In this document: one piece after another, positions 27,579-54,248 of the stretch
How the letters are laid out: each line of letters opens with the position of its first letter
Position numbering within the stretch: position 1 is the stretch's first letter
NCBI GenBank assembly: GCA_965603825.1
Contig: CBFDEM010000011.1
Coordinates: 682,001 to 746,000 of the forward strand
Length of the DNA: 64,000 bases
Source of the DNA: Blepharisma stoltei ATCC 30299
Lineage: Eukaryota; Protista; Ciliophora
Direction: 5' to 3'
Program-made: the position numbers and the translations under genes
The notes under the pieces: model-generated
Told to the model about the DNA's origin: nothing
What the model saw: only the letters and a program-made list of their open reading frames with translations
Databases searched by the model: none

Positions 27579-28133
27579 TTCTATCTAATAAGTTAAACTT
27601 CAAATAAATTGTTTTAAATTCAGGACAATTATTTTAATTTATTGGATAAAAATTATATAAAGATTGCTTTATTTCTACAACTATATTTGGATTTAGATGA
27701 TATATGAAAAAGAATAGTTTAATAATAAAAATATATTAAAACTGCTCTTAATGCCATAAAAGTCATTTTATAGTGAAATAGAAACATTTTATCTTAGATA
27801 TACGAATCGTATTGAGTGCTGAGTTTTAGAAATCATACATTTGAGATTTTTAAACCAATTCTAATTTTCATTTGTAAAATTTATTATATAATCTACTTAA
27901 TAGGTATATATTGATAGTTTTGTCATCTATAAATGAAGCTCTTGTTTAAAATATAAAATTATTTTATTTTTCTTCTTTTGTAGTCTTATAATATTTTTGC
28001 TATAATTAAAAACATTACAATTGCTTATGATTAGGTTTGAATTGCCTTAATTTGGCATTAAATTTTATATATTTATTGAAAATTCGCCATATTATAGGCG
28101 ATGAGGAGATAAAATCTTAAATTTATATAAAAA

Positions 28134-29021
28134 ACGAAATATTTTTCTTTTTTTACACTTTCTGTTTTAGCCTAATCAGGCCCTGCTGTTCAGCCTAAAG
28201 ATTCTGATTTTGTTGCCCCACAAGCAATGACTGACGAAATCAACAGTACCTAAGACTCATGGATTGCTTCTGCTGAGTGCGTTGACCAAATGACAATAGC
28301 TGAAGCCAGACGTAAATTTTCCTTACAACCCAAATCTAGAGAATTTCCAGAATATGATTGGGGTGCGTTCTTAAACTATCTCTTAGTTTCAGCATCGTTT
28401 GATTCAAGAATCCAATGGCCTGAATGTATTCATCCTATTCAAAATGATGATGGATGCTATGGTGGCTGGGCATATGCAGCTATCGAGATCTTTTAGACAG
28501 ACTTTGTATCGCTTCAAATAAAAACATTAATGTTGTGCTGTCTCCTAGGGTATCTAATAGCTTGTGATATCCAATACGATAACGGATGTAGCGGAGGATA
28601 TGACTTAAGCAATATTGAAGTCCTTTAGCATCTTGCATTCCTTTCCATGGATAGTATAGATAGTCCATGCCTTACTAAATGCAACTCAAGAGCATCACTT
28701 CAATTTTATAAAGCTGCGTCTGTTAACACCTATAGCGGTGTATCGTCTATCTAAGCTGCAACCTTGGTAAATGGCCCAGTTGAGACTACTATTTACGAAG
28801 ATTTCTTGACATATAGCGGAGGTATTTACAAGCACACTAAAGGAAATCTTGTAGGAACTTTCAATGTAAAGCTTATAGGATGGGGAAATCAAAGCTGAAC
28901 GAACTATTGGATTGCTGCCAACTGCTGGGGAACTCTTTGGGGTATGAAAGGATATTTCTGAATTGTGTTTGGAGAGTGTGGAATTGATACTCAAGCTGTA
29001 ACTGGATCGCCTAATGTTTAA
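28134..29021 (+). pseudogene. cathepsin B-like unit 1, decayed pseudogene of the inactive clade
   Basis: ATG>ACG, in-frame TAA at 28173 and 28251, several indels. Active-site segment NDDGCYGGW. Confidence 0.9.
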
Positions 29022-29782: not shown

Positions 29783-30703
29783 ATGAGATATCTTTTGTTT
29801 CTATCAATCTTTGTCTTAGGACCTGCTGTCAAGCTTACAGATCCAGATCTGATTGCTATGCAAGAAATGGTTGACGAAATTAATAGAGTTCAAGACTCAT
29901 GAACTGCTTCTACTGACTGGCTCAGCCAAGTAACAATTGCTAAAGCTAAAAGTAAGCTGCTGCTCTCAGAGCCAAAGCCAAGAATATTCCCAGAAAAAGA
30001 CTGGGGTACGCTATTAGATTACCTCTCAATCCCAGCATCTTTCGACTCAAGACAAAAATGGCCAAACTGCATTCATACAGTTCAGAACGATGAAGGATGT
30101 GATGGAGGTTGGGCATATTCAGCTACTGGTGTTCTTGCAGATCGATTTTGCATAGCTACTAATGGCACAGTTAATGTTGTGCTATCTCCGGGATTTCTCC
30201 TAGTTTGCATCATAGATCCCATAATAATGAACTGTAATGGAGGAACTGATGATGCAGCTTGGCAATTTTTGTCAAAAAGTGGAACAGTTACAGAAGAATG
30301 CGTTCCTTATCATATATGAAGTGCAGACGATCCATGCCCTAATCATTGCAATGATCACTCAAAATTTGTATATTACAAAGCTAGCAATGTGAAGAAATAC
30401 TCTAATCCAAGCTCTATGCAAGCTGCAATCTTAGCGGGAGGACCTATTGAAACTCATCTGAAACTTTATGAAGATTTACTGACTTATAAAGGAGGCATTT
30501 ATATACATACAACAGGGAAGCATATAGGTCATACCTCTGTTAAAGTGGTTGGATGGGGCAATCAGGGTGGAACGAACTATTGAATTGCACAAAACGTTTG
30601 GGGAACTCTTTGGGGCCTGAAAGGATATTTTTGGATAGCTTTTGGTCAGTGCGAAGTTGATACAAACGCTATAGCTGGAGATCCTAAAATTAAAAATAAC
30701 TAG
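29783..30703 (+). CDS. cathepsin B-like unit 2, intact non-peptidase homolog
   Basis: 306-aa ORF with TGA=Trp. NDEGCDGGW (Q>D, C>G) and GHTSVK (H>T). Signal peptide is 3 residues shorter than in units 3 and 4. Confidence 0.88.
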
Positions 30704-31296
30704 CTTTCTTCATAAATACTTGATCCTTTAAATCTTCAATTTCGGTTATTTTGAGCTAATTTTAAGTATGTGTGGCACACTCTGCTGATTCATTGATTGC
30801 TAGCCATAACGAAAAGAGTTCATGAGTTTGTTGAGCTCTTGATAATTTTTTTAAAAAATAGCTTATTCAAGTTAAGTTTGAAAAATCAGCTTTCCGGAAA
30901 CTTATGCTATTCCTAAAGTTTGTTTTGATTAAATGTAAAACTTTGAGCTATATGATCATTGCTCAAATAAATTCTTTTAGAAAATTAATCTAAATATTCT
31001 TATTTTAGGCTCACTTAATGTTCCCTGTGAAAATAACGAATTATCATCAATTCCATAAGCTCATTAAGACTAATAAGAATTAAGAACTTAATAGATCGTT
31101 TTTATTTCTTTTTCACTCAGCTTTGAAAATAAGCTCTAGAATTATCTCTTTGCTACTATAACTTTAAATAGGCTCTATTTACTTAAAATATAATTATTTC
31201 TTTACTCGTCATTTTGGTAATAATATAAAATAAATTCTCCACATTATTGTTGATATTAAAATACAATATTCGTGGTGAAATAATTAGAGCAATAAA

Positions 31297-32223
31297 ATGA
31301 AATATCTTTTGTTTCTATCAATCTTTGCCTTAGCTCTTTCAGGGCCTGCTGTCAAGCCTACAGATCCAGAACTAATTGCTATGCAAGAAATGGTTGACGA
31401 AATTAATAGAGTTCAAGACTCATGAACTGCTTCTACTGACTGGCTCAGCCAAGTAACAATTGCTAAAGCTAAAAGTAAGCTGCTGACCTCAGAGCCAAAG
31501 CCAAGAATGTTCCCAGAAAAAGACTGGGGTACGCTATTAGATTACCTCTCAATCCCAGCATCTTTCGACTCAAGACAACAGTGGCCAAACTGCATTCATC
31601 CAGTTCAGAACGATGAAGGATGTGATGGTGGTTGGGCATATTCAGCTACTGGTGTTCTTGCAGATCGATTTTGCATCGCTACTAATGGCACAGTTAATGT
31701 TGTGCTGTCTCCGGGATTTCTCCTAGTTTGCATCATAGATCCAGTAGTAATGAACTGTAATGGAGGAACTGCTGATGCAGCATGGCAATTTTTGGTAGAA
31801 AGTGGAACCGTTACAGAAAAATGCGTTCCTTATCATATATGAAGTGCAGAAGATCCATGCCCTAATCATTGCAATAATCTGTCAAAATTTGTATATTACA
31901 AAGCTGCGTATATGCAGACATACGCTGGACCGAGCTCTATGCAAGCTGCAATCTTAGCAGGAGGACCTATTGAAACTACTCTGAAAGTTTATGAAGATTT
32001 ATTGACTTATAAAGGAGGCATTTATAAGCATGTAACGGGGAAGTATATAGGTATGAGCTCTGTTAAAGTGATTGGATGGGGTAATCAGAATGGAACGAAC
32101 TATTGAATTGCACAAAACGTTTTGGGAACTCTTTGGGGCCAGAAAGGATATCTTTGGATAGCTTTTGGTCAGTGTCAAGTTGATACAGAAGCTGTAGCTG
32201 GAGCTCCTTATCCGATTATCTAA
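31297..32223 (+). CDS. cathepsin B-like unit 3, intact non-peptidase homolog
   Basis: 308-aa ORF with TGA=Trp. NDEGCDGGW, GMSSVK, QNVL. Confidence 0.88.
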
Positions 32224-33067
32224 TAACTTTCTTCATAAATACTTACATCCTTTAAATTTCAATTTCAGTTATTTTGAGCTAATTTAAAAAGTATGTGTGG
32301 CAAAGTCTGCTGATTCATTGATTGCTAGCCATAACGAAGAGTCCTAAAGTTTTTAAGTTCTTGATAATTTTTTTAAAAAATAGTTTATTCAGTTTAACTT
32401 TGAAAAAGCAACTTTTGCTAGAACTTATGCTATTCCTAAAGTTTGTTCTGATTATTGCAAAACTTTGAGCTTTATGATCATTGTTCAAATATCTTCTTTT
32501 AAAAAATTAATCTAAATATTCTTATTTATAGCTATTCATTTATGCTTCGTGCTATAGATTTAATTATTAAATAATAAAAAGCTCATTGGTATATATTGCA
32601 ATTATGTCATTACTCTATTTAATATAATTTGTTTTAGTTCGTATTATTTTTCGATGAAGTGTTTGAATTTTTTTTCACCCTAAAAACATTTTTTGCTTCT
32701 TCTTACATTTCTGACTGAAGAAAAATAGGTGGGAAAACTTCATCGAAGTTTTTTCCGCTTTCCCCCTATTTTAGGCTCACTTAATGTTACTTATTATGAT
32801 ATAGAATAATCATCAATTCCATAAGTTTATTAAACTAATCAGGAATAAGAACTTATTAGATCGTTTTTATTTCTTTTCCACTCAGCCTTTAAAAATAACT
32901 CTAGAACTATCTTTTTGCTACTCAATAACTTTAAATAGGCTCTATTTACTTAAAGTATAGTTATTTCTTTACTCGTCATCATTTTGGTGATAATATAAAA
33001 ACAATTTCTCCACATTATTGTTGATATGAAATTACAATATTCATGGTGAAATAATTAGAACAAGAAA

Positions 33068-33994
33068 ATGAGACATCTTTTGTTCTTATCAATCTTTGTC
33101 TTAGCTCTTTCAGGACCTGCTGTCAAGCCTACAGATCCAGATCTGATTGCTATGCAAGAAATGGTTGACGAAATTAATAGAGTTCAAGACTCATGAACTG
33201 CTTCTACTGACTGGCTCAGCCAAGTGACAATTGCTAAAGCTAAAAGTAAGCTGCTGACCTCAGAACCAAAGCCAAGAATGTTCCCAAAAAAAGACTGGGG
33301 TGCGCTATTAGATTACCTCTCAATCCCAGCATCTTTCGACTCAAGACAGCAGTGGCCAAAGTGCATTCATCCAGTTCAGAACGATGAAGGATGTGATGGT
33401 GGTTGGGCATATTCAGCTACTGGTGTTCTTGCAGATCGATTTTGCATTACTACTAATGGCACAATTGATGTTGTGCTGTCTCCGGGATTTCTCCTTGTTT
33501 GCATACTAGATCCCGTAGAAATGAACTGTAATGGAGGAACTGCTGATGCAGCTTGGCAATTTTTGGTAGAAAGTGGAACCGTTACAGAAAAATGCGTTCC
33601 TTATCATATATGAAGTCTAGACGATCCATGCCCTAATTATTGCAATGATCACTCAAGATTTGTATATTACAAAGCTGCGTATATGCAGACATACGCTGGA
33701 CCGAGCTCTATGCAAGCTGCAATCTTAGCAGGAGGACCTATTGAAACTACTCTGAAAGTTTATGAAGATTTACTGACTTATAAAGGAGGCATTTATAAAC
33801 ATACATTGGGGAAGTATATAGGTATGAGCTCTGTTAAAGTGATTGGATGGGGTAATCAGAATGGAACGAACTATTGAATTGCACAAAACGTTTGGGGAAC
33901 TCTTTGGGGGCAGAAAGGATACCTTTGGATAGCTTTCGGTCAAGTCGAAGTTGATAAAGAAGCTGTAGCTGGAGCTGCTAATCCGAAAATCTAA
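33068..33994 (+). CDS. cathepsin B-like unit 4, intact non-peptidase homolog
   Basis: 308-aa ORF with TGA=Trp. NDEGCDGGW, GMSSVK. Confidence 0.88.
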
Positions 33995-34653
33995 TAACTT
34001 TCTTCATAAATACTTATATCCTTTAAATTTCAATTTCAGTTATTTTGAGCTAATTTAAAAAGTATGTGTGGCAAAGTCTGCTGATTCATTGATTGCTAGC
34101 CATAACGAAGAGTCCTAAAGTTTTTAAGCTCTTGATAATTTTTTTAAAAAATAGTTTATTCAGTTTAACTTTGAAAAAGCAACTTTTGCTAGAACTTATG
34201 CTATTCCTAAAGTGTGTTTTGATTTTGATGTAAAGCTTTGAGCTATATGATTATTGCTCAAATAAGTACGTTAAGACAATTAATCTAAATATTATTTATA
34301 GCCTTATTCTTTTGATAGCTCATTTGCTTGCCTATTTAAATTATCAGAAAGAAGATCCTTAAAAGCATCCAAAAATTTTATAGGGAAATAACTTTGAGAA
34401 TATTTAATTTTTAAACATTAAAATTCGTGAGAAATTTTTTATATTTAATAAAATTAATGAATAACTTTAACAATAGCAATAGTTAAGCCATTTAATTCAG
34501 AATAAATCAAATATTAGTAATCCCTATATTGTAATTACTCAAATAGACGTATTTAGCCCTCATTTATCTCGCCATTCTTTGGTTTAATAAAATTCTCAAT
34601 ATTATTGTTGATGCGGAAATAAAATTTATGTGGTGAAATAATTATAATGCTAA

Positions 34654-35575
34654 ATGAGATATAGGGGAAACCCCTATATCTTTTATTTGTTTCAATTTAT
34701 GCTTTTGCCTTTTCAGGATCTATTCTGCTTGAGATTCTGACATTGTTGCTCCACGAGAAATCGATGACGAAATTAATAGAATTCAAGACTCATGGGCTGT
34801 TTCTTCTGACTGGATTGGCCAAACGAAAGTTGCTGAAGCTAAGCAGAGAGTAGCCCAATGCCAGAGTCTCTAAAATTTCCAAAAAAAGATTGAGGTGCAC
34901 TATTAGATAACCTCTCAAATTCAACATATTTCGAGCATGACCAAATTGCATTTATCCAATTCAAAATGATAATATGTGTTATGCTGACTGGCTTGCGGCT
35001 GCTGATTCTCTTTCAGACAAACTTTGCATTGCTTCAAATAATACTGTTAATGTTGTACTATGGCTAGTAGAACTTGCAAATTTCAATTTCATAACCATAA
35101 ACCCTACATGCAATGGAGGAACACTCGAAATAGCTTGGAGATTTTAACAGAAATACGTAATAACTACAGCTAGCTGCCTCCCTCTTAGTTTGCTTGATAA
35201 ACAATATCCATGCCCTGAAAAATATACCTCATCATCAGAACAATTGAAATCATATAAAGCCGAAAATATTAAAACATACAATGGTTCATTATCTATTAAA
35301 GCTGAAATTTTAAAACGATGGCTTGTTGAGACTATAATGAAAGTTTATCAAGATTTTTTGACTTATAAAGGAGGTATTTATAAGTACACGACGAGGAATC
35401 TTGCAGGATACTTCTGTTAAAGTTATTGGATGGAGTACTCAGAATGGAACAAACTATTGAACTGTGGCTTATGCTTGGGGAACTAATTGAGCTCTGCAAG
35501 GATATTTCGGATTGCTTTTGATAAGTGCGAATTTGGCTTGCAGGCAATAACTGGAGGTTCTGTTTACTCTCATAA
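34654..35575 (+). pseudogene. cathepsin B-like unit 5, decayed pseudogene
   Basis: 17-nt palindromic insertion just after the ATG and multiple small deletions relative to units 6-8. Active-site segment NDNMCYADW. Confidence 0.9.
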
Positions 35576-35879
35576 ATAAATTGATTAATTTTACTATTCA
35601 TCAATTTGTCCATAAATTGGATAATAATGATGAATTTAAATACACTGCTTCATATAATAATTACGGCTAAACAAAATCAAAAGTAATCCGCTTCCTTATT
35701 TTTAAATAGAAAAATATATAAACCCTTAATCTAACCCTAAACTTGCTGTAAAATTTATTTATAATTGTTTATCGTTTTAAAAGAAGATTATAATGAGCCT
35801 AGTCAGAAATTCCGATATTGCAATGATTCGACAAACACATCGAACCCTTTTAGCTCATCATAGTTTTGCTTAATATAAT

Positions 35880-35938
35880 TCACCATATTATTGCTGATAT
35901 GGTGATGAAATGTACAAGGTGAAATAATTATAATAAAA
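35880..35938 (+). promoter_or_regulatory. conserved cathepsin upstream element (TCACCATAT-N8-ATATGGTGA palindrome plus GGTGAAATAA box)
   Basis: Also at 37846-37871 and 39741-39766. Degenerate versions and the GGTGAAATAA box precede most other units. Confidence 0.55.
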
Positions 35939-36855
35939 ATGAGATATCTTTTATTTGCTTCAATTTGTGCTCTAGCCTTTTCAGGACCTATTCTGTTTCA
36001 AGATTCAGACCTTGTTGCCCCACAAGAAATGATTGACGAAATTAATAGAAGTCAAGACTCATGGACTGCTTCTTCTGACTGGGTTGGCAATATGACAGTT
36101 GCTGAAGCCAAGCAGAGAGCAGCTCAAAGGCCAGGGTCTCAAAAATTTTTAAAAAAAAATCGAGGTGCACTATTAGATAGCATCTCAATTCCAGCATCTT
36201 TTGATGCAAGGCAACAATGGCCAAATTGCATTCATCCAATTCAAAATGATGACAATTGTCATGCTGGCTGGGCGTTTGCAGCTGCTGATACTCTTTCAGA
36301 CAGATTTTGCATTGCTTCAAACGGTACCGTAAATGTTGTGCTATCGGCAGCAGAAATTGTACTTTGCCTATTAGAAAAGCCTTCATGCACTTTAGGAACA
36401 ACTGATTTAGCTTGGAATTTTATAAAAGATATGGAACAATGTCAGAAAGATGCATGCCACAAAGCTTGATAGCTACAAGTAAAATATGCCCTACTGTATG
36501 CCACCCCATTGACATTATTATCTATTATAAAGTCAAAAAAATTTACACATTCCAAGGCCAACCAGAAATTCAAGTTGGAATTTTAAAAGGAGGGCCTGTT
36601 GAAGTTAATATGGAAGTTTATCAAGATTTTTTGACTTATAAAGGAGGTATTTATAAGCACACGACGGGGAATCTTGTAGGATACACTTCTGTTAAAGTGA
36701 TTGGATGGGGTAATCAGAACGGAACAAACTACTGAATAGCAGCAAACGCTTGGGGAACTAGTTGGGGTCTGCAAGGATATTTTTGGATTGCTTTCGGTCA
36801 GTGCAATTTTGACGTTGAAGCTATAGCTGGAAAACCTGATTATGAACCTGAATAA
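35939..36855 (+). pseudogene. cathepsin B-like unit 6, non-peptidase homolog with a single frameshift (possible assembly error)
   Basis: NDDNCHAGW, GYTSVK. One base is missing in the A-run near 36424-36429 relative to unit 8. Otherwise open. Confidence 0.7.
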
Positions 36856-37904
36856 TAAGAAGCAAGCTATAAATCCAAAAATAATAATCTTAAAAGAATA
36901 TAAAGCATCTTGCTTTAAATAATAATTCTATAATAAAGGATAAAAATGCGCTATTATCGAGCTTCTTCTCTCGTAGCTAACGAAAGTAAATTTTGCTACT
37001 TGTGAAGTGAGCTATGAAGAGCCTAATTGATTAACACTGATAAGTAGCTTACTTTCATATAAATGCAGATTATTTATCTCTAATCGCTTTCTTTGCTATT
37101 TATTATAAGATTATTTTTAATTCTTTTTTCTACTTTTTCAGGTTTATGCAAGAAATTATCAGTCTTCTTCTAATATTGGAATAATTCTACTTTAAGAACT
37201 AAAAAGAAGTTATGGAATATACTTTATCTACAGAAGAACTTTTCTAATTGTATCTTGTTTCAAAACTTATGAAAAGAAAGGAAGATTTAAAAAAATGTGA
37301 TTTCGTTAGAGCTTGCTATGCAGACGCTAATTTATTAAATACATATAATTTTAAAAATTGAGTTAATAAAATACTTACTTAAGTATGCTTTCTTTATTTA
37401 CTCTACCATTTTAGTGAAAAATTATTGCAATTGATAAATTGTGCTGAAACTAAATAATTTCTTCCTCTTCTAGTTGCTTTTATAAAAACGTCAAAGTTCC
37501 TTGCTGGTAGTAATTTCTTAAAATGGACTCCAATTTATATATTTAAATAAAACACTATTTACTCAATGAAAATTCACCATTTTGTAGGCGAGATAAAAAT
37601 AAAACAATCGTGGTGAAATAATATAAATTAAACTATAACTTTAAGAGTATTCTAGGCTATATTTTAGAAAAAACCGAGGTGCCCTCAGGCCCTTAATCTA
37701 ACCCTAAACTTGCTGTAAATTTTATTTATAATTGTTTAATGTTTTAAAAGAATATTATAATGAGCCTAGTCAGAAATCCGATATTGCAATGACTCGACAA
37801 GCACATCGAGCCCTTTTAGCTCATCATAGTTTTGTTTAATATAATTCACCATATTATTGTTGATATGGTGATGAAATGTACAAGGTGAAATAATTATAAT
37901 AAAA

Positions 37905-38819
37905 ATGAGATATCTTTTATTTGCTTCAATTTGTGCTTTAGCCTTTTCAGGACCTATTCTGTTTCAAGATTCAGACCTTGTTGCCCCACAAGAAATGATT
38001 GACGAAATTAATAGAGTTCAAGACTCATGGACTGCTTCTTCTGACTGGGTTGGCAATATGACAGTTGCTGAAGCCAAGCAGAGAGTAGCTCCAACAATAG
38101 GGTCTCAAAAATTTTCAAACAACGATTGAGGTGAACTATTAAATTACCTCTCATTTCCAGCAACTTTCGATTCGAGGCAACAATGGCCAAATTGCATTCA
38201 TCCAATTCAAAATGATAGCGATTGCCATGCTGGCTGGGCGTTTGCAGCTGCTGATTCTCTTTCAGACAGATTTTGCATTGCTTCAAACGGTACCGTAAAT
38301 AATGAGCTATCGGCAGCATTTATTGTACTTTGCAGTCTAGCTTCTCCTTCATGCATTGAAGGAACAACTGATTCAGCTTGGAACTTTTTAAAGCAATTTG
38401 GAATACCTAAAGCAAGTTGCACTCCTCTCAGCTTGATAGGCAGTAGTCAATGCCCTAGTTTGTGCCACCCCCTTGCTCCATTTACCTTATTTAAAGTCAA
38501 AAAAATTTACACATTCCAAGGCCAACCAGAAATTCAAGCTGGAATTTTAACAGGAGGGCCAGTTGAAGTTAATATGGAAGTTTATCAAGATTTTTTGACT
38601 TATAAAGGAGGTGTTTATAAGCATACGACGGGGAAACTTATAGGATACACTTCTGTTAAAGTGATTGGATGGGGTAATCAGAACGGAACAAACTACTGAA
38701 TAGCAGCAAACGCTTGGGGAACTAGTTGGGGTCTGCAAGGATATTTTTGGATTGCTTTCGGCCAGTGCAAATTTGACGTAGAAGCTATTGCTGGAAACCC
38801 CGATTATAAAGCTCAATAA
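37905..38819 (+). CDS. cathepsin B-like unit 7, intact non-peptidase homolog
   Basis: 304-aa ORF with TGA=Trp. NDSDCHAGW, GYTSVK, ANAW. Confidence 0.88.
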
Positions 38820-39799
38820 TAAGAAGTAAGCTATAAATCCAAAAATAATAATCTTAAAATTTAAAGAATATAAAGCATTTTGCTTTAAAATAATAATTCT
38901 ATAATAAAGGATAAATATTCGGTATTATCGAGCTTCTGCTCTCGTAGCTAATGAAAGAATATTTTGCTACTTGTGAAGTGAGCTATGAAGAGCTTAATTG
39001 ATTTATACTGATAAGTAGCTTACTTTCATATAAGTGTAGATTATTTATCTCTAATGCACTTTCTTTGCTATTTATTATAAAATTATTTTCAATTCTTTTT
39101 TTCAATCTTAGTTATATATAAATATTTGTAATAACTGATAAAATGGGTTTAAGTTTATCAAAATAAGATAAATGAATAATATGAATGTTTAAAGCTTACT
39201 TTTCAGGTTTACTAAAAGAGATGATTAACCTTCTTCTAATATTTTTGAAGCTCTTGTTTCAAAATTTAAAAAATGTGATCCCATTAGGGCTTGCTAAGTA
39301 TGCTTTCTTTATTTATTCTTCCTCTTCTACTTGCTTTTATAAAACGTCAAAGTTCCTTGCTAGTAGTAATTTCTTAAAATGGACTCGAATTTATACATTT
39401 ACACAAAACACTATTTACTAAATGAATATTCACCATTTTATAGGCGATATAAAATAAAACAATCGTGATGAAATAATAGGTTATTTGTGTAAATATTATA
39501 ATGCTTAGATTTTTAAGTACTACTGTAACTGTTACTTTAGAGTATTCTGAACTATATTTTCGAAAAAACCAAGGTGCCCTCAGGCCCTTAATCTAACCCT
39601 AAACTTGCTGTAAAATTTATTTATAATTGTTTATCGTTTTAAAAGAATATTATAATGAGCCTAGTCAGAAATCCGATATTGTAATGACTCGACAAGCACA
39701 TCGAACCCTTTTAGCTCATCATAGTTTTGCTCAATATAATTCACCATATTATTGTTGATATGGTGATGAAATGTACAAGGTGAAATAATTATAATAAAA

Positions 39800-40717
39800 A
39801 TGAGATATCTTTTATTTGTTTCAATTTGTGCTTTAGCCTTTTCAGGACCTATTCTGTTTCAAGATTCAGACCTTGTTGCCCCACAAGAAATGATTGACGA
39901 AATTAATAGAGTTCAAGACTCATGGACTGCTTCTTCTGACTGGGTTGGCAATATGACAGTTGCTGAAGCCAAGCAGAGAGTAGCTCCAACAATAGGGTCT
40001 CAAAAATTTTTAAAAAAAAATTGAGGTGCACTATTAGATAACCTCTCAGTTCCAGCATCTTTTGACGCAAGGCAACAATGGCCAAATTGCATTCATCCAA
40101 TTCAAAATGATGGCAATTGTCATGCTGGCTGGGCGTTTGCAGCTGCTGATACTCTTTCAGACAGATTTTGCATTGCTTCAAACGGTACCGTAAATGTTGT
40201 GCTATCGGCAGCAGAAATTGTACTTTGCAGTCTAGAAAAACCTTCATGCATTGGAGGAACAACTGATGTAGCTTGGACTTTTATACAGCAATATGGAACA
40301 AATTCAGAAAGATGCACGCCACAAAGCTTGATAGCTACAAGTAAAGTATGCCCTACTGTATGCCACCCCATTGACATTATTATCTATTATAAAGTCAAAA
40401 AAATTTACACATTCCAAGGCCAACCAGAAATTCAAGCTGGAATTTTATCAGGAGGGCCTGTTGAAGTTAATATGGAAGTTTATCAAGATTTTTTGACTTA
40501 TAAAGGAGGTGTTTATAAGCACACGACGGGGAATCTTGTAGGATACACTTCTGTTAAAGTGATTGGATGGGGTAATCAGAACGGAACAAACTACTGAATA
40601 GCAGCAAACGCTTGGGGAACTAGTTGGGGTCTGCAAGGATATTTTTGGATTGCTTTCGGTCAGTGCAATTTTGACGTAGAAGCTATAGCTGGAAAACCTG
40701 ATTATAAAGCTCAATAA
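39800..40717 (+). CDS. cathepsin B-like unit 8, intact non-peptidase homolog
   Basis: 305-aa ORF with TGA=Trp. NDGNCHAGW, GYTSVK. Confidence 0.88.
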
Positions 40718-41569
40718 TAAGAAGTAAGCTATAAATCCAAAAATAATAATCTTAAAATTTAAAGAATACAAAGCATTTTGCTTTAAATAATAATTCTATA
40801 ATAAAGCTTCTTCTCTCGTAGCTAACGAAAGTAAATTTTGTTACTTGTAAAGTGCGCTATGAAGAGCCTAATTGATTTGCACTGATAAGTAGCATACTTT
40901 CATCAAAATGCAGATTATTTATCTCTAATGCACTTTCTTTGCTATTTATTATAAGATTATTTTCAATTCTTTTTTTCAATCTTAATAATATATAAATATT
41001 TCAATTTCTGATAAAATGGGTTTAAGTTTATCAAAAAATAAAAGAATAATAAGAATGCTTGAAGCTTACTTTTTCATGTTTTATAAAAGAGATTATTAGC
41101 CTTCTTCTAATATTAGAATAATTTCTACTTTAAGAAAGTTATAGCATATACTTCATCTGCAGAAGAACTTTCCTAATTATATCGCAGTCTTCATTTTTGG
41201 AGTAATTGTTTCCAAGCTTCTGAAAAGCAAGGAAGATTTAAAAAATGTAATTCAGTTAGAGCTTGCTATGTAAACGCTAATTTATTAAACACATATGATT
41301 TTAAAAATTGGCTTAATAAAATACTTACTTAAGTATGCTTTCTTTATTTATTCTACCATTTTAGTTAAAAATTATAAAAATTGATAAATTGTGCTTAAAC
41401 TAAATAATTTCTTCCTCTTCTAGTTGCTTTTATAAAACGTCAAAATCCCTGCTGTTAGTAATTTTTAAAATGGACTCCAATTTATATATTTATACAAAAC
41501 ACTATTTACTAAATGAAAACTCACCATTTTGTAGGCGAGATAAAAATAAAACAATCGTGGTGAAGTAAA

Positions 41570-42514
41570 ATGAAATATCTTTTGTTTGTATCTCTTTTTG
41601 TGTTAACCCTTTCAGGGCCTGCTGTTGAGCCTAAAGACTCAGATCTTGTTGCCCCACAGGAAATGATTGATGAAATCAACCGAGTCCAAGACTTATGAAT
41701 TGCGTCATCTGAGTGGGTTGGAAATATGACATTTGCTCAAGCCAAACTTTACGCATCTTCAAAATTGGAAGCTAAAAAATTTCCAGAAAAAGACTGGGGT
41801 GCACTTTTAGACTACCTCTCAATTCCGGCATCTTTCGATTCAAGAACGCAATGGCCTTACTGCACAAAACCCTTATGGTACGGTGATGATTGTAATGCCG
41901 GCTGAGCATTTGCAGCAGCCGAAACTATGACAGACAGGTTTTGCATTGCAACAAAAGGAGCATTCAATATCACATTTTCCCCTCTTTATCTAATAATTTG
42001 TGATGTTACCTTGCCCGAACTAGGGTGCTTGGGAGGAACCGCTGAAAATTGCTGGGATTATATGAGGACTACAGGGATCACTTCAATAAAATGCTTTCCT
42101 TATAATCCTGGTGACTGGAATCAATACTGCCCTTATGATGAATGCCGTTGGGGAACAGAGATTACTCTTTACAAGACTTTGTCTGTGAATACTTTCACTA
42201 GCCCATCATCTATTCAAGCAGAAATATTGCAAAATGGCCCAATTGAAGCTACAATGACTGTTTATGCAGATTTCCAAGCATATAAAGGAGGTATTTATAA
42301 GCATACCACAGGGGGTCTTGTAGGGTACACCAGCGTGAAAATTATTGGGTGGGGAAACCAAAGCGGAACGAATTATTGGATTGCAGGCACATCTTGGGGA
42401 TCTACTTGGGGTATGAAAGGATACTTTAATATTGCTTTTGGACAATGCGGCATCGATCGCGCTGGTGTAGCTGGCCCTCCTGATCTTTCAAATATTCCAA
42501 CCATTAAAATTTAA
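41570..42514 (+). CDS. cathepsin B-like unit 9, intact non-peptidase homolog (all catalytic residues lost)
   Basis: 314-aa ORF. YGDDCNAGW (W encoded by TGA), GYTSVK, AGTSW (N>T). Confidence 0.88.
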
Positions 42515-43809
42515 TGATCTAAGCATTCATTTATAAAAATATACATTTTAATACTTTAAGCAGTTCACAAAGAAAAAATTCTTTTCATTTAATAAAATAT
42601 TGCTAATTTAAAATTTAAAGATTAAAAATGAATTAATCATTTTTAATTTTATTATTCCAGGCTTTAAAATTTTCTTCAAAAAGTTTAAATAAAAGAAATA
42701 AAAAACTCTCTATAATCAATTATTCTTAATCTTACCAATAATTTTATATATACTGAAAGCTTTAATATTATTACTTATTTAGCTTTTAATATTTTTTTAA
42801 TTAATGTCTTGAACATTTGTAATATTGTATAACATTTTATAGTAAACATATTTAATTAAGTTTATTTTATTGTTTATATGGCCTATTTAATTTTTTATTA
42901 ACTTTCTTCTATTTAATTTTATTCGATGTTTGATTTCCCAGTCTCATCGATATATTATCAATATGATGAAAAATTAATTTTCAAAAAATCCCCTAAAAGC
43001 AAATGATTTTTACTCATAAATCAGAGCTAATGCATGTGGCTAAAATTTTTAATAAATTGCCCCGAGAAAATGTATTACTATTATAAAACGCAAAGCAAAT
43101 GGCATAGAGTTAATATTCCTTGGATTCAACCGACTATATTATAGCAAAATCTTAATGATTATTTCATTCTTTATTCATCTCTGAATTTAAATAAATTAGA
43201 AATTCAGCTTACTACTTCAACTTCTCCCATTTCTCTAATAATACTCTGTTTGTATACATTCTGTTTTTTAGTTTCTTTCTTTTCAAACATCAGTTTATTA
43301 AGCCCTTTGCACCGCTTGCTATTTTCCCTTCATTCACTCCAAGGAGAATAAAAAAATTTCTTATTCAGAGAGAGTTTAATTTTTTGATGAAAATTTTTTG
43401 GTGGTTCTGAAACTTTTCAATTTGAAGTAACCTGAAAAAGACTAAGATAACAATTAATCTATCTAATCCAATATTTTTGAAGCTCTTGCTTCAAAATTTA
43501 AAAAATGTGATGCCATTAGAGCTTGCTCTGTAAACTCTAGCTACAAATGATTTTAAAAATTGACTTAATAAATACTTACTTAAATATGCTTTCTTTATTT
43601 ATTCTACCATTTTTAGATAAAAATTATAAAAATTATTTACAACTAAATAATCTCTTCTAGCTGCTTTTATAAAAACGTCAATGTTCCATTCTGGTAGTAA
43701 TTTCTTAAAATGAACTCCAATTTATATATTTATACAAAACACTATTTACTAAATGAAAACTCACCATTTTGTAGGCGAGATAAAAATAAAACAATCGTGG
43801 TGAAATAAA

Positions 43810-44754
43810 ATGAAATATCTTTTGTTTGTATCTCTTTATGTTTTAGCCCTTTCAGGGCCTGCTGTTGAGCCTAAAGACTCAGATCTTGTTGCTCCACAGG
43901 AAATGATTGATGAAATCAACCGAGTCCAAGACTTATGAATTGCGTCATCTGAGTGGGTTGGAAATATGACATTTGCTCAAGCCAAACTTTACGCATCTTC
44001 AAAATTGGAAGCTAAAAAATTTCCAGAAAAAGACTGGGGTGCACTTTTAGACTACCTCTCAATTCCAGCATCTTTCGATTCAAGAACGCAATGGCCAAAC
44101 TGCACAAAACCCTTATGGGACGGTCAAAATTGTAATGGCGGCTGGGCATTTGCTGCAGCCGAAACTATGACAGACAGGTTTTGCATTGCAACAAAAGGAG
44201 CATTCAATATCACATTTTCCCCTCTTTATCTAATAATTTGTGATGACACCATGTCCGAAAAAATGTGCTATGGAGGAAGCGCTGAAAGTTGTTGGGATTA
44301 TATGAGGACAACAGGAATTACTTCAATAGAATGCTTTCCTTATCATCCTGGTGACTGAGATCAATGGTGCCCTGATGATACATGCCGTTGGGGAACAAAG
44401 ATTACTCTATACAAGACTAAATCTGTGAAAACTTTCACTAGCCCATCGTCTATTCAAGCAGAAATATTGCAAAATGGCCCAATTGAAGCTACAATGACTG
44501 TTTATGCAGATTTCCAAGCATATAAAGGAGGTATTTATAAGCATACCACAGGGAAACTTGTAGGGTACACCAGCGTGAAAATTATTGGGTGGGGAAACCA
44601 AAGCGGAACGAATTATTGGATTGCAGGCAACTCTTGGGGATCTACTTGGGGTATGCAAGGATACTTTAATATTGCTTTTGGACAGTGCGGCATCGATAGT
44701 GCTGGTGTAGCTGGCCCTCCTGATCTTTCAAATATTCCAGCCAGTAAAATTTAA
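43810..44754 (+). CDS. cathepsin B-like unit 10, intact non-peptidase homolog
   Basis: 314-aa ORF with TGA=Trp. DGQNCNGGW, GYTSVK, AGNSW. Confidence 0.88.
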
Positions 44755-45938
44755 TAATCTAAGCACGCATCTATAAAAATACACATTCTAATACTATAAG
44801 CAGTTCACAAAGAAAAAATTCTTTTCATTTAATAAAATATTGCTAATTTAATATTAAAAGACTAAAAAATGAATTAACCATTTTTAATTTTATTATTCCA
44901 GGCTTTAAAATTTTCTTCAAAAAGTTTAAATAAAAGAGATAAAAAGCTCTCTATAATCAATTATTCTTAATCTTGCCAATAGCTTTATATATGCTGAAAG
45001 CTTTAATATTATTACTTATTTAGATTTTAATATTTTTTCAACTAATGTCTTGAACATTTGTAATATTGTATAACATTTTATAGTAAACATATTTAATTAA
45101 GTTTATTTTATTGTTTATATGGCCTATTTAATTTTTTATTAACTTTCTTCTATTTAATTTTATTCGATGTTTGATTTCCCAGTCTCATCGATATATTATC
45201 AATATTGCTCAATGCAAGCTTTAATGCCTATGGCTAAAAATTTTGGTAAATTGCCCCGAGAAAATGCATTACTATTATAAAACGCAAAGCTAATGGCATA
45301 GAGCTAATATTCCTTGAACTCAACCGACTATATTATAGCACAATCTTAATGATTATTTCATTCTTTATTTCATATCTTAATTTTAAATAAATTATAAACT
45401 GAGTTTGCTACTTCAACTTCTCCCATTTCTCTAATAATACTCTTCTTGCGTACATTCTATTTTTTAGTTTCTTTATTTTCAAATATCAATTATTAAGCCC
45501 TTTGCACCGTTTGCTATTTTCCGTTCAGAGACTCCAAGGAGAATAAAAATAATTTCTTTATTCAGAGAGAGTTAATGTTTTGATGAAAATTTTTTTGTGG
45601 TTACCTGAAGAAGACTTTATTTCTTTCTATAATTTTTACTTTTTTATTGGGTTAAATTCCAAAATTATCACAATGCATTTTGTCTTAGCACATGCTTTTT
45701 AATTTCTTCTTCCATTTTTAGACAAAAATATAATGATTATTGTAGCTAATAAATCATCTAAAAATAAGTGAGTATATCTCTGATACTTATAGTTCAAATA
45801 AGATATCAAAATAGGTTATTGTTCGTAATTACAAAAATAATTCTGATTATCTATACTCACTTCAAAATAATTTCTTCAATAAAAATTCGCCATATTACAG
45901 GCGATATGGAGATAAAATCCTTGAGGCGAAATAATAAA

Positions 45939-46862
45939 ATGAAATATCTTTCATTTATATCACTCTTTGCCCTAGTTCTATCAGGGCCTACAGTTCAGCT
46001 TAAAGACTCAGATCTTGCTATCCCACAAGAAATGATTGATGAAATCAACAGAGTCCAAGACTCCTGGATTGCATCTTCTAAGTGGGTTGGTAACATGACA
46101 ATTGCTGAAGCCAAGCATAAAGCATCCACAATATCTAAACCTCGACCATTTCCAGCAAAAGAAATTGGTGCATTATCAGACTACCTTTCAATTCCAGCCT
46201 CCTTCGATGCAAGAACAAAATGGCCAAACTGCATTCACCCAATCCGTAACGATGATTTATGCGATGCTGGCTGGGCGTTTGGAGCTACTGAAACTCTGTC
46301 TGACAGATTTTGCATTGCTTCAAATGGCAAAATTAACATTGTTTTGTCACCACTATATCTGATAGTATGTGATATTTCATATGACGATAGATGCAGCTTC
46401 GGTAGTCCTGATTCTGTTTGGAATTTCATGAAAAATTATGGAGTACCTACAGAATCATGCCTTCCTTATAATGTATTAGATACAGATGAAATGTGCCCTA
46501 ATTCTTGCTGGTTAGGAAACGATTTCCAATTCTATAAGGCTGCGACTGTGAACTCATTCAATGGTACAGCAGCGATCCAGGCTGAAATATTAGCAAATGG
46601 GCCAGTTGAAGTTATTTTTACCATGTATCAAGATTTGTTGTCCTATAAGGGAGGCATTTATAAGCATACAACAGGTGATTCTTTAGGAACTACCTGTGTG
46701 AAGGTAGTCGGGTGGGGAAATCAAAGTGGAACTAATTACTGGATTGCTGCTAACTCTTGGGGAACTCGTTGGGGTTTACAAGGATACTTTTGGATTGCTT
46801 TTGGGGAGGGCGGGATTGGTAAACAAGCTGTAGCTGGGACTCCATATATTAAAGGCCTATAG
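45939..46862 (+). CDS. cathepsin B-like unit 11, intact non-peptidase homolog
   Basis: True start is MKYLSF at 45939 (signal peptide), not 45768. NDDLCDAGW, GTTCVK, ANSW. Confidence 0.9.
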   Translation: MKYLSFISLFALVLSGPTVQLKDSDLAIPQEMIDEINRVQDSWIASSKWVGNMTIAEAKHKASTISKPRPFPAKEIGALSDYLSIPASFDARTKWPNCIHPIRNDDLCDAGWAFGATETLSDRFCIASNGKINIVLSPLYLIVCDISYDDRCSFGSPDSVWNFMKNYGVPTESCLPYNVLDTDEMCPNSCWLGNDFQFYKAATVNSFNGTAAIQAEILANGPVEVIFTMYQDLLSYKGGIYKHTTGDSLGTTCVKVVGWGNQSGTNYWIAANSWGTRWGLQGYFWIAFGEGGIGKQAVAGTPYIKGL

Positions 46863-47685
46863 CATTCATTAATCTAATACGCCTCATTTAAAATACTTTG
46901 TGTTTTAAAATTTTTATATAAAATTGCATATTCAGATACCCTAAGCCAAACAAAAGTGTAGATGCAAATCAATTTGCCCGAAAAAAAACTTTTCTAATAT
47001 TTACAAAAATATCATAGAAGTGAATCAAAAGTGGTAAGATGAATTTTCAAATCTATAACATGATAATTTATCATAAATCTAATAAATTTTTAATCTAAAG
47101 ATTTTTATTTTATGTTTTACTGTTTGGTTTTGAAATATCGCAGGGCAATAACCGCAGCTACTGATTAAGTAGATTAAAAAGCATGCATTATATCTAATAC
47201 CCTTGAAATCATTAAAGAAGCTTAAATATCTTTCAAAATCCTTTTAGTTGATTCAAGTTAAACTAATTTCCGCTATTTTAATTATTGTATTACGAAAATT
47301 CATTGCTCCAGCAATATTAAGTATATTTATAAATCAATTGTTTGAGAAGATATAGCATAGGCATCCTTAATACTCTCTATATGAGCTAACCTGCACTTTT
47401 ATCTGTAGATATTACACTAGAAAATCAATTGCTATGAAAGTTTAAAAGTAAGCAAAAAATGCACTAATTTATCTGTCTGCTTATCAATTTAATCTCATTT
47501 AAATATTGACAGAATGGCACTGTGTGCAGAGATGGCTCCTATGCAACGATTATATATATTTTTGCTATCTAATATTTCTTTCATTCTTTTCTCTAGTCTC
47601 TTTTATCATCAAAACTCTATTACGTCATTTGAACATCCATATTTTCGCTGATCTGGGGAAGAAATTCTAGTGGTGTCCTTATAAA

Positions 47686-48585
47686 ATGAAATATTTTGCT
47701 TTTGCAGCTCTCATTGTTTTAGCCTTGTCAGGACCTGCAATTGAACTTAAAGACTCAGACCTTGTATGTCCTCAAGAAATGATTGACGAAATCAACAGCA
47801 TCCAAGATTCATGGACTGCATCTTCTGAATGGGTTGGCCAAATGACCGTTGCCGAAGCCAAGCTTAAAGCTTCTTCAATCTCAAGACCTAGAGAATTCCC
47901 AGAAAAAGATTGGGGTGCACTAATAAACTACTTCTCGGCTCCAGCTTCATTCGATTCAAGACAACAGTGGCCTGGATGCGTTCATCCAATCCTTAACCAA
48001 GAGCAGTGCGGATCCTGCTGGGCATTTGGAGCAAGTGAAGCTCTCTCAGATAGACTTTGCATTGCTACTAACGGAACAGTCAATGTCACTTTGTCCCCAC
48101 AATATCTTGTATCTTGCGATTCTCAAAACTACGGATGCAACGGTGGTTACGCAGACCTTGCCTGGAGATTCATGAAAGATACCGGAGTTCCAACATACTC
48201 ATGTGTTCCTTATATTGCAGCAGACGGAACTTGCCCTACCAAATGCGCTGATGGATCTGCCCTTCAATTCTACAAGGCTACATCTGTAAACACATACAGT
48301 GGCCCATCATCTATCCAAGCTGCAATTTTGGCAGGAGGCCCAGTTGAAGTTACCTTCCAAGTTTACAAAGACTTCATGTCATACTCTGGTGGTATCTACA
48401 AGCACACCAAGGGAGAATTTGTCGGAAACCACTGCGTCAAAATCATCGGATGGGGAAACCAAAGTGGAACCAACTACTGGATTGTTGCTAACTCTTGGGG
48501 AACTTCTTGGGGTCTTCAAGGATTCTTCTGGATTGCCTTCGGACAATGCGGAATTGATAGTCAAGGTGTAGCTGGAAGCGCTTAA
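47686..48585 (+). CDS. CTSB: cathepsin B-like cysteine protease, unit 12 (catalytically complete)
   Basis: Signal peptide, QEQCGSCWAF, GNHCVK, ANSW. No occluding loop. Confidence 0.93.
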   Translation: MKYFAFAALIVLALSGPAIELKDSDLVCPQEMIDEINSIQDSWTASSEWVGQMTVAEAKLKASSISRPREFPEKDWGALINYFSAPASFDSRQQWPGCVHPILNQEQCGSCWAFGASEALSDRLCIATNGTVNVTLSPQYLVSCDSQNYGCNGGYADLAWRFMKDTGVPTYSCVPYIAADGTCPTKCADGSALQFYKATSVNTYSGPSSIQAAILAGGPVEVTFQVYKDFMSYSGGIYKHTKGEFVGNHCVKIIGWGNQSGTNYWIVANSWGTSWGLQGFFWIAFGQCGIDSQGVAGSA

Positions 48586-51873: not shown

Positions 51874-52777
51874 ATGAAAAGCATCATTTTCTTAGGCTTC
51901 GTCTTAGCTGCATTTGCAAGTCCAGCTTTTAGACTTAGAGATTCTGACCTTGTGATGACACAAGAGCAAATAGACCACATAACCAAAGCCAAGATTAATG
52001 GACTGCCTCCTCTGATTGGGTTGGTTCCATGACAATTGGAGAAGCCAGAAAATACGCCTCAACCAAAATCATCTACAACGACTTCCCAGAAAAAATTGGG
52101 GAAAGCTCTTAGACCACTTGCAAATCCCATCTGCTTTTGACGCTAGACAAAAATGGCCTTCTTACATTCATCCAATCCTTAATCAAGGAAATTGCAGCTC
52201 TGATTGGGCTTTTGGAGTCAGTGAAGTTCTTTCAGACAGATTCTGTATTTTTTCAAATAGCACAATAAATGTTGTCCTTTCCCCTCAATATCAGATGAAT
52301 TGTGACCATAATAGTTATGGCTGCTTGAATGGAAGTCCCTATTTAGCTTGGAAATACATGAGAGATTATGGCATCCCATCCCTAGCTTGTACCCCATATG
52401 CTGGTGTACAACAAGGTTGCGTTAAAGTATGCTCCGATGGATCTCCTATGAGATATTATAAGGCTGCATCTTTTTATACTCTCAGTAAACCTGCATCAAT
52501 TCAGGCAGAGGTTCTGCAAAATGGCCCAATAGAAGTTTCTTTCCAGGTTTACCAAGATTTTTATGCATATAAGAGTGGTGTTTATAAGCACACCACTGGA
52601 AAATTGGTTAGTCGTCACTCAGCCAAAATTATTGGATGGGGAGCTCAAGGGGAAACTAATTATTGGATTGTTGCTAACTCTTGGGGTGATACTTGGGGTA
52701 TGAATGGATACTTCTGGATTGCTTTTGGAGATTATGGAATTAATAATACTGGTGTTGCTGGACTTCCTGCAGTCTAA
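51874..52777 (+). pseudogene. cathepsin B-like unit 16, unit-14 paralog with Cys>Asp and frameshifts in the prodomain
   Basis: QGNCSSDW, SRHSAK. 1-nt deletions near 51980 and 52095. Confidence 0.8.
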
Positions 52778-53344: not shown

Positions 53345-54248
53345 ATGAAAAACATCATTTTCTTAGGCTTCGTCTTAGCTGCATTTGCAAGTCCAGCTTT
53401 TAGACTTAGAGATGCTGACCTTGTGATGACACAAGAGCAAATAGACCGCATCAATCAAAGCCAAGATTTATGGACAGCCTCCTCTGATTGGGTTGGTTCC
53501 ATGACAATTGGAGAAGCCAGAAAATACGCCTCAACCAAAATCATCTACAACGACTTCCCAGAAAAAATTGGGAAAGCTCTTAGACCACTTGCAAATCCCA
53601 TCTGCTTTTGACGCTAGACAAAAATGGCCTTCTTGCATTCATCCAATCCTTAATCAAGGAAATTGCAGCTCTGCTTGGGCTTTTGGAGTCAGTGAAGTTC
53701 TTTCAGACAGACTCTGTATTTTTTCAAATAGCACAATAAATGTTGTCCTTTCCCCTCAATATCTGGTTAATTGTGACATTGCAAGCTTTGGCTGTGGCGG
53801 TGGATATGCCAGTTATGCTTGGAGATTCATGAAAGATCATGGCATCCCAACCCAAACTTGTACCCCATATGCTGGTGTAAATCAAGTTTGCGTTAAAGAA
53901 TGCTCCGATGGATCTACTATGAGATATTATAAGGCTGCATCTGTGAGTACTTTCAGCTCACCCGCATCAATTCAGGCAGAGGTTCTGCAAAATGGCCCAA
54001 TAGAAGTTTCTTTCCAGGTTTACCAAGATTTTTATGCATATAAGAGTGGTGTTTATAAGCACACCACTGGAAAATTGGTTAGTCGTCACTCAGCCAAAAT
54101 TATTGGATGGGGAGCTCAAGGGGAAACTAATTATTGGATTGTTGCTAACTCTTGGGGTGATACTTGGGGTATGAATGGATACTTCTGGATTGCTTTTGGA
54201 GATTGTGGTATCGATAGTTATGGTGTTGCTGGATTTCCTGCAGTCTAA
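53345..54248 (+). pseudogene. cathepsin B-like unit 17, unit-14 paralog with Cys>Ala and a homopolymer frameshift
   Basis: QGNCSSAW, SRHSAK. 2 nt short at GAAAAAATTGGGAAAG (about 53561-53576). The mature domain is open. Confidence 0.72.

Follow-up and report, generated by a model that had tools for sequence, protein, structure and literature searches.

What keeps the loops of a dead protease apart? The question is raised by a stretch of 64,000 nucleotides from the ciliate Blepharisma stoltei ATCC 30299 (contig CBFDEM010000011.1, positions 682,001 to 746,000; referred to here as the window, with all coordinates counted from its first letter), in which a tandem array of cathepsin-B-like genes, most of them without catalytic residues, sits in the macronuclear genome (41.5 Mb, 64 contigs). 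For positions 30200-46520, the original prediction had described hypervariable loops lining the former substrate cleft and had read them as the product of diversifying selection on a binding surface. The pattern of loop differences is real. Adaptive hypervariability, on the other hand, is not shown, since no solid sign of selection is left once rate variation and gene conversion are controlled for. Instead, we lean, with moderate confidence, toward a family of dead zymogens under relaxed constraint, in which the loops evolve close to neutrality and the contrast with their surroundings has been sharpened by conversion.

Read with the bacterial code, the array region yields short open reading frames (ORFs). 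Its TGA codons, however, coincide with conserved Trp sites that are TGG in other copies, and UGA encodes Trp in B. stoltei according to the published genome (PMC9942806). With TGA read as Trp, a row of single-exon genes of 299 to 314 codons appears on the + strand, as follows.

Unit 1, 28100..29020, + strand: broken by in-frame TAA/TAG stops; approximate bounds; outside 30200-46520.
Unit 2, 29783..30703, + strand: intact dead procathepsin-B-like gene, 306 amino acids (aa), three TGA (Trp) codons; loop 2 at 30206-30244.
Unit 3, 31297..32223, + strand: intact dead gene, 308 aa; loop 2 at 31729-31767.
Unit 4, 33068..33994, + strand: intact dead gene, 308 aa; loop 2 at 33500-33538.
Unit 5, 34650..35550, + strand: broken by several in-frame TAA stops and frame changes; approximate bounds.
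Unit 6, 35939..36855, + strand: split into two ORFs by a frameshift near 36400-36470; loop 2, CLLEKPSCTLG, at 36365-36397.
Unit 7, 37905..38819, + strand: intact dead gene, 304 aa; loop 2 at 38331-38363.
Unit 8, 39800..40717, + strand: intact dead gene, 305 aa, two TGA codons; loop 2 at 40226-40258.
Unit 9, 41570..42514, + strand: intact dead gene, 314 aa; segments 1 to 3 at 41876-41905, 41999-42037 and 42092-42145.
Unit 10, 43810..44754, + strand: intact dead gene, 314 aa; segments 1 to 3 at 44116-44145, 44239-44277 and 44332-44385.
Unit 11, 45939..46862, + strand: intact dead gene, 307 aa, no TGA codon; loop 2 at 46368-46403.
Unit 12, 47686..48585, + strand: first copy with catalytic residues (CGSCWAF, His and Asn), used as the reference for the loops; loop 2 at 48115-48147.

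Eight of these genes are thus long, intact dead ORFs (units 2, 3, 4, 7, 8, 9, 10 and 11), while 3 of the 11 array copies are broken (units 1 and 5 by stops, unit 6 by its frameshift). Downstream of the dead units, units 12 to 14 retain the CGSCWAF motif and the His.

All units match the Peptidase_C1 profile PF00112, with E values from 1e-49 (unit 11) to 1e-63; a partial sequence of unit 9 reached 2e-38. The closest solved structures found by HMMER were those of procathepsin B, and an AlphaFold2 model of unit 10 (mean predicted local distance difference test score of 94) superposed on procathepsin B zymogens with template modeling scores of 0.81 to 0.88. By family profile and fold, the array proteins are therefore cathepsin-B-like members of Peptidase C1A. 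Units 2 to 11 nevertheless lack what defines an active enzyme of this family, namely the Cys25/His159 dyad together with Gln19 (papain numbering): the catalytic Cys is replaced by Gly, the His by Thr or Ser, and the oxyanion Gln by Asp, Gly or Ile. The Asn175 equivalent is retained in all of them except unit 9, in which this third catalytic residue is now Thr (42350-42352, AGTSWG); unit 10 keeps the Asn. Intact dead genes also retain the conserved cysteines, the signal peptide and the propeptide. Neither active nor dead Blepharisma copies have the occluding loop that marks cathepsin B proper, some 20 residues that include the pair His110-His111; a short stump takes its place. In unit 12, 27 residues (169-195) replace 57 of procathepsin B (chain positions 152-208), a region that HMMER leaves unaligned.

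Phylogenetically, units 2 to 11 and a copy located about 105 kb upstream form a monophyletic dead clade (bootstrap 100) with active unit 12 as its sister, a topology indicating that the catalytic residues were lost once, before the expansion. The upstream locus is itself a second small cluster (G000:C11:576894-577796 and 578917-579772), consisting of a broken copy and an intact one, whose loop, CDIEYDNRCSGG, resembles that of unit 11.

The three segments named in the original prediction were placed by HMMER alignment to procathepsin B in combination with the family alignment, and these alignments bear out the proposed, sequence-based mapping to the oxyanion region, the S2-S3 wall and the occluding-loop position. 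Segment 1 corresponds to the stretch from Gln19 to Cys25 (papain numbering), in the oxyanion region. Segment 2 aligns with the loop between the equivalents of Cys62 and Cys71, just before Gly73-Gly74 of cathepsin B, a loop (loop 2) that corresponds to the S3/S2 wall among the subsites of the papain family. Segment 3, finally, lies between the equivalents of Cys100 and Cys132, the place of the occluding loop in cathepsin B. Since the cysteines flanking the segments are invariant, the variable loops are suspended between conserved disulfide anchors.

As for the variability itself, all 10 of the quoted strings running from the conserved Cys to the GG motif were found, with TGA read as Trp, in units 2 to 4 and 6 to 12 (among them CLLEKPSCTLG, CSLASPSCIEG and CSLEKPSCIGG, with CDSQNYGCNGG in active unit 12), and so were the three pairs of segments said to distinguish units 9 and 10 (YGDDCNA/DGQNCNG, VTLPELGCL/DTMSEKMCY and NQYCPYDEC/DQWCPDDTC). 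By a post hoc count, these segments, 25 residues in total, contain 14 of the 30 amino acid differences between the two units. At the DNA level, units 9 and 10 differ per 100 nucleotides (nt) by 0 to 4 in the 5′ coding part, by 11 to 17 in mid-coding windows and by 1 to 5 in the 3′ coding part. The claim that their prodomain and 3′ spacer DNA is almost identical therefore holds for the prodomain (0 to 4%) but not for the spacers, which are only similar (4 to 13% difference where alignable). Clustering of amino acid differences extends to the other young dead pairs: for units 9/10, 7/8 and 2/3, the dispersion index was 1.8 to 2.65 (permutation p ≤ 3e-4), whereas in active pairs clustering was weaker or absent (1.15 and 0.87). 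It does not always coincide with the named segments. Among units 2, 3 and 4, segment 1 does not vary and segment 3 hardly does, and the hot stretches of the pairs 7/8 and 2/3 also take in the end of the propeptide (7/8), columns 203-219 and the C-terminal tail.

Part of the sharpness of this picture can be traced to the flanks. Sawyer-type runs of identity, counted at sites that are variable in the family, were significant in the prodomain of units 9/10 (p = 0.003), 7/8 (p < 1e-4) and 2/3 (p = 0.019), and the prodomain shows only about one-third to one-quarter of the synonymous divergence measured in the mature part outside the segments. The runs themselves lie at 41570-41850, 37905-38140 and 29880-29990 of the window. 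Because such runs are a signature of conversion, the sharp contrast between near-identical and divergent parts is partly that of a homogenized flank, and their extent suggests that conversion tracts end before the variable middle part.

Against this background, the explanation given in the original prediction has to be weighed with some care. It would make the dead cathepsins a secreted binding repertoire, of inhibitor decoys or recognition proteins, whose loops have been driven apart and shielded from conversion by diversifying selection; we consider this possible but doubtful. Several observations nonetheless weigh in its favor and against mere relaxation, starting with the site models, which we fitted with an in-house GY94/F3x4 implementation that treats TGA as sense to the nine intact genes of the dead clade (the eight array units and the upstream copy). 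Standard comparisons did return a class of codons with a ratio of nonsynonymous to synonymous rates (dN/dS, omega) above 1: twice the difference in log likelihood was 21.7 for M1a versus M2a (p = 2e-5), 29.9 for M7 versus M8 (p = 3e-7) and 26.3 for M8a versus M8 (p = 3e-7), with an omega of 3.5 to 4.9 for 4 to 6% of codons in the whole gene and of 3 to 5 for 15 to 19% within columns 105-215. When three partitions of the gene were fitted separately, every one on a tree of its own, the signal was confined to those columns (p = 1e-6 to 6e-4) and was absent from the propeptide and C-terminal partitions. Recent, within-cluster divergence alone still yielded p = 0.005, and the active clade was without a comparable signal (none in M1a versus M2a; one borderline result, p = 0.036, in M7 versus M8). 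M8 omega estimates of 129 to 143 in the active clade (p = 0.04 to 0.18) were read as saturation and set aside.

The sites inferred by these models, moreover, include columns 157-158 in the loop before the GG wall (loop 2), columns 182-199 (segment 3, the occluding-loop stump, and its edge), columns 205 and 212, and column 261, beside the former His, and the loops concerned are stapled by the invariant cysteines. Columns 157, 158, 182, 199 and 205 changed in three of four independent recent contrasts. Mid-coding divergence in the pairs 7/8 and 9/10 reaches 17 to 24% per 100 nt, about twice that of neighboring spacers. Loops remain diverged where flanks appear converted; nowhere else in the genome is there a possible donor of the divergent loop 2 DNA, and patch conversion from another macronuclear copy was rejected on the grounds of this donor search, in which the loop DNA of units 9 and 10 matched only each other (85%). 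A between-strain hint comes from a DNA run apparently derived from another strain (about 4 to 5% divergent), in which the unit 10 allele shows four of eight listed replacement codons, from an incomplete list, in or beside the named loops. With nine synonymous changes against these eight replacements, unit 10 is constrained overall. Finally, an inactive cathepsin B1 of the fluke Trichobilharzia regenti (TrCB1.5/TrCB1.6), a paralogue with a Cys29-to-Gly replacement that is processed in trans, is known to bind cystatin (PMC7054455).

One argument against taking these results at face value is the behavior of the likelihood-ratio signal under among-site variation in background rate. With two or three background-rate classes added (for the deep tree, branch lengths could change only by a common scale factor; for the recent contrasts they were free), p rose to 0.40 and 1.0 in the recent contrasts, to 0.70 in the middle partition and to 1.0 for the whole gene. 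Rate heterogeneity itself was significant (p = 2e-5) and fitted better than a class with omega above 1 (log likelihood of -5341.3 versus -5345.4), thereby removing the signal. The M8-versus-M7 comparison that the original prediction had proposed as a check yields its omega above 1 in the standard form, without such classes. Counts from the recent contrasts agree: the ratio of nonsynonymous to synonymous differences per site (pN/pS) was 0.9, 1.06 and 0.73 for segments 1 to 3 and 1.0 for other coil, a class assigned by DSSP that serves as a proxy for other surface loops. The segment-wide ratios stay between 0.7 and 1.1 because synonymous change is elevated there as well, pS being 0.17 in loops 2 and 3. 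For segment 1 it is 0.08, for mature regions outside the segments about 0.09 and for the prodomain 0.028. It should be noted, however, that selection against homogenization of the loops would likewise raise their synonymous divergence, so the rate-heterogeneity result is compatible with selection.

Direct comparison of structural classes leads to the same point. In the recent contrasts, omega of the segments versus other coil was 0.66 versus 0.97 with free synonymous rates and 1.40 versus 1.08 with equal rates; on the deep tree it was 0.49 versus 0.44; and in none of these fits did the two classes differ (p = 0.21 to 0.72; the tests of whether dN/dS is higher in the segments than in other coil gave p = 0.21 to 0.96). 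Across the dead clade, cleft-loop omega is below 1 (0.49, p = 0.0014), next to 0.30 for helix and strand, 0.44 for other coil and 0.41 for the propeptide; the corresponding active-clade values are 0.23, 0.11, 0.23 and 0.24. Relaxation in the dead clade is thus about two- to threefold in every structural class rather than specific to the cleft loops. The loops are also equally variable in one of the two active paralogue pairs: between the active copies on contigs C46 and C58, these same loops are the most variable part (0.31, versus 0.15 for coil and 0.08 for helix and strand, at the protein level), and units 12 and 13 show hardly any difference between cleft loops (0.28) and coil (0.27). The loops, in other words, are not the outliers in dN/dS that diversifying selection would require; they evolve like other coil, which is essentially the outcome that the original prediction had named as its refutation. 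The breakage of 3 of 11 array copies also speaks against a selected repertoire, and the closeness of the variable sites to the former cleft is as given by the alignment.

Expression and orthology bear on the same question. Several of the dead genes are alive, in the sense that they are expressed: in two RNA-type sequencing runs, contigs were confined to the coding parts of units 9, 10 and 11 and absent from the spacers. For unit 11, an mRNA contig of 1054 nt spans 45851-46895 and ends in a nontemplated poly(A) stretch 33 nt after the stop. This mRNA, whose stop codon is TAG, apparently starts no more than about 90 nt before the ATG, so its untranslated regions would be very short. The subfamilies of units 6 to 8, 9/10 and 11 each have a transcriptome-derived orthologue in a second Blepharisma (bootstrap 100 each), two of the three known as protein only; a metagenome scan for orthologue DNA found nothing closer than 49% identity. 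Between unit 11 and its orthologue (L031), dS was 0.59, dN 0.135 and omega 0.23; loop 2 carries four synonymous changes but encodes the same peptide in both, and protein-level differences were not enriched in the loops. With loop omega not elevated, the unit 11 loop conserved between species, and loops varying in an active pair, diversifying selection on the former cleft is a possibility rather than a demonstrated cause: standard models do give an omega above 1 in the middle of the gene, but this vanishes under rate-class controls.

The same data make it improbable that the dead units are functionless, decaying relics with drifting loops. It is true that units 1, 5 and 6 are broken, that gene-wide dN/dS of young dead pairs is 0.45 to 0.91 (0.17 to 0.22 in active pairs) and that about 42% of dead-clade codons fall into a class with an omega of 1. 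Yet eight long ORFs are intact and still encode the conserved cysteines, the signal peptide and the propeptide; omega for the clade as a whole is 0.38, and 54 to 58% of codons sit at 0.14; the low omega of unit 11 against its orthologue holds at considerable synonymous depth; units 9 to 11 are transcribed, unit 11 with polyadenylation; and orthologous transcripts exist in the second species. Even less credible is an artifact of misalignment or of misassembled repeats. Tandem arrays are hard to assemble, and loop lengths differ between subfamilies, which makes the deep alignment columns of loop 2 uncertain; but within clusters, where alignments are gapless save for single in-frame indels in units 2 and 7, the pattern persists, and DNA and RNA contigs from independent public runs match units 9 to 11 exactly.

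We therefore return to relaxed constraint, under which the stretch would be a birth-and-death tandem array of procathepsin-B-like genes whose products, given their signal peptide, are probably secreted or vacuolar. One ancestral copy would have exchanged its catalytic Cys for Gly and lost its His and its oxyanion Gln; its descendants, in the array (units 1 to 11) and about 105 kb upstream (one copy), have kept the signal peptide, propeptide, four disulfide pairs and fold. They are still expressed, at least several of them, and under net purifying selection, if relaxed about two- to threefold relative to their active neighbors. Young duplicates diverge chiefly in L-domain loops held by disulfides, the S3/S2 wall loop and the occluding-loop stump among them. 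In any papain-family protein these are the parts that tolerate mutation and determine specificity, and in such duplicates they evolve at a roughly neutral rate (omega of about 1), while conversion would homogenize the 5′ part of cluster members and the middle part would keep an older divergence. The products may enter a secretory or phagosomal route, may be trimmed there by active neighbors and may act by binding rather than cutting; that is, they could be noncatalytic binders, for example of inhibitors or peptides, processed in trans.

The Trichobilharzia Cys29-to-Gly paralogue is the nearest documented parallel. Like it, the Blepharisma proteins are expressed zymogens of the cathepsin B type that carry Gly in place of the catalytic Cys but are otherwise intact as zymogens, and in both cases active paralogues stand alongside; the fluke proteins, too, are well expressed, and a noncatalytic binding role has been proposed for them. 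They differ in that they keep the occluding loop and have few paralogues, whereas Blepharisma, a free-living ciliate, lacks the occluding loop, has also lost the His and the oxyanion Gln, and carries the dead genes as an 11-copy tandem clade. Another comparison is with the active paralogues of the same genome (units 12 to 14 and the C46 and C58 copies), which share fold, propeptide, disulfides and the short occluding-loop stump but keep Cys, His and Asn and have a two- to threefold-lower omega in every structural class. Animal TINAG and TINAGL1 likewise combine a cathepsin B fold that lacks the nucleophile with secretion and a nonenzymatic binding role; they are distant from the Blepharisma proteins, however, with extra N-terminal domains, and are single copy and conserved rather than tandemly expanded. 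The SMIPP-C and SMIPP-S proteins of scabies mites resemble the Blepharisma family as expanded, expressed protease homologues without catalytic residues, but these belong to the group 1 allergen-like cysteine proteases and to the serine proteases, respectively, and are parasite proteins that interact with the host.

Pseudoenzymes in which a protease fold serves as a binding scaffold are known mainly from parasites and animals. This picture is broadened by a tandemly expanded family that is expressed and partly constrained and belongs to a heterotrich, a free-living ciliate; the Blepharisma array offers a simple system in which to ask what a dead cathepsin cleft binds. Should selection after all be what keeps the loops distinct despite conversion, which we hold only tentatively, a free-living protist would have turned a protease scaffold into a family of variable-loop binders, whose targets might be cysteine protease inhibitors from prey or competitors, or which might have a role in recognition. 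Two further lessons are more general: a near-identical flank next to a divergent core in tandem genes can stem from gene conversion, and standard site models overstate positive selection where background rates vary along a gene.

Outside the array clade, the nucleophile has been lost independently in further copies of the family, two of them in the window (units 15 and 16, 51983-52774 and 53445-54245) and others on contigs C43 and C14 (G000:C43:4467-5351 and G000:C14:524919-525746), with the motifs CSSDWAF, CSSAWAF, CLASWAF and CSSSWAF; formation of pseudoproteases is therefore recurrent in this genome. A link of the family to the mating pheromone gamone 1 (blepharmone) is unlikely, judging from the published features of its gene and from the names of database hits. 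Gamone 1 of B. stoltei is encoded by an ORF of 305 aa without UGA codons and with a UAA stop (PMC10892320), and none of the genome's family members fits all three features: TGA-free copies measure 299, 300, 301, 307 or 308 aa, and the only copy of 305 aa, unit 8, contains two TGA codons. None of the family's database hits carries the name of a gamone, and the supplement of the genome paper mentions neither cathepsin nor papain.

Lastly, in contigs of the divergent DNA run (X12), the spacer that follows unit 9 is fused to the one that follows unit 10 (43429/45619), with 2189 nt skipped, and the reverse joint (45573/43392) is seen as well. Either the copy number of the unit 9/10 repeat may be different in the other strain, or the similarity of the spacers may have misled the placement of these contigs.

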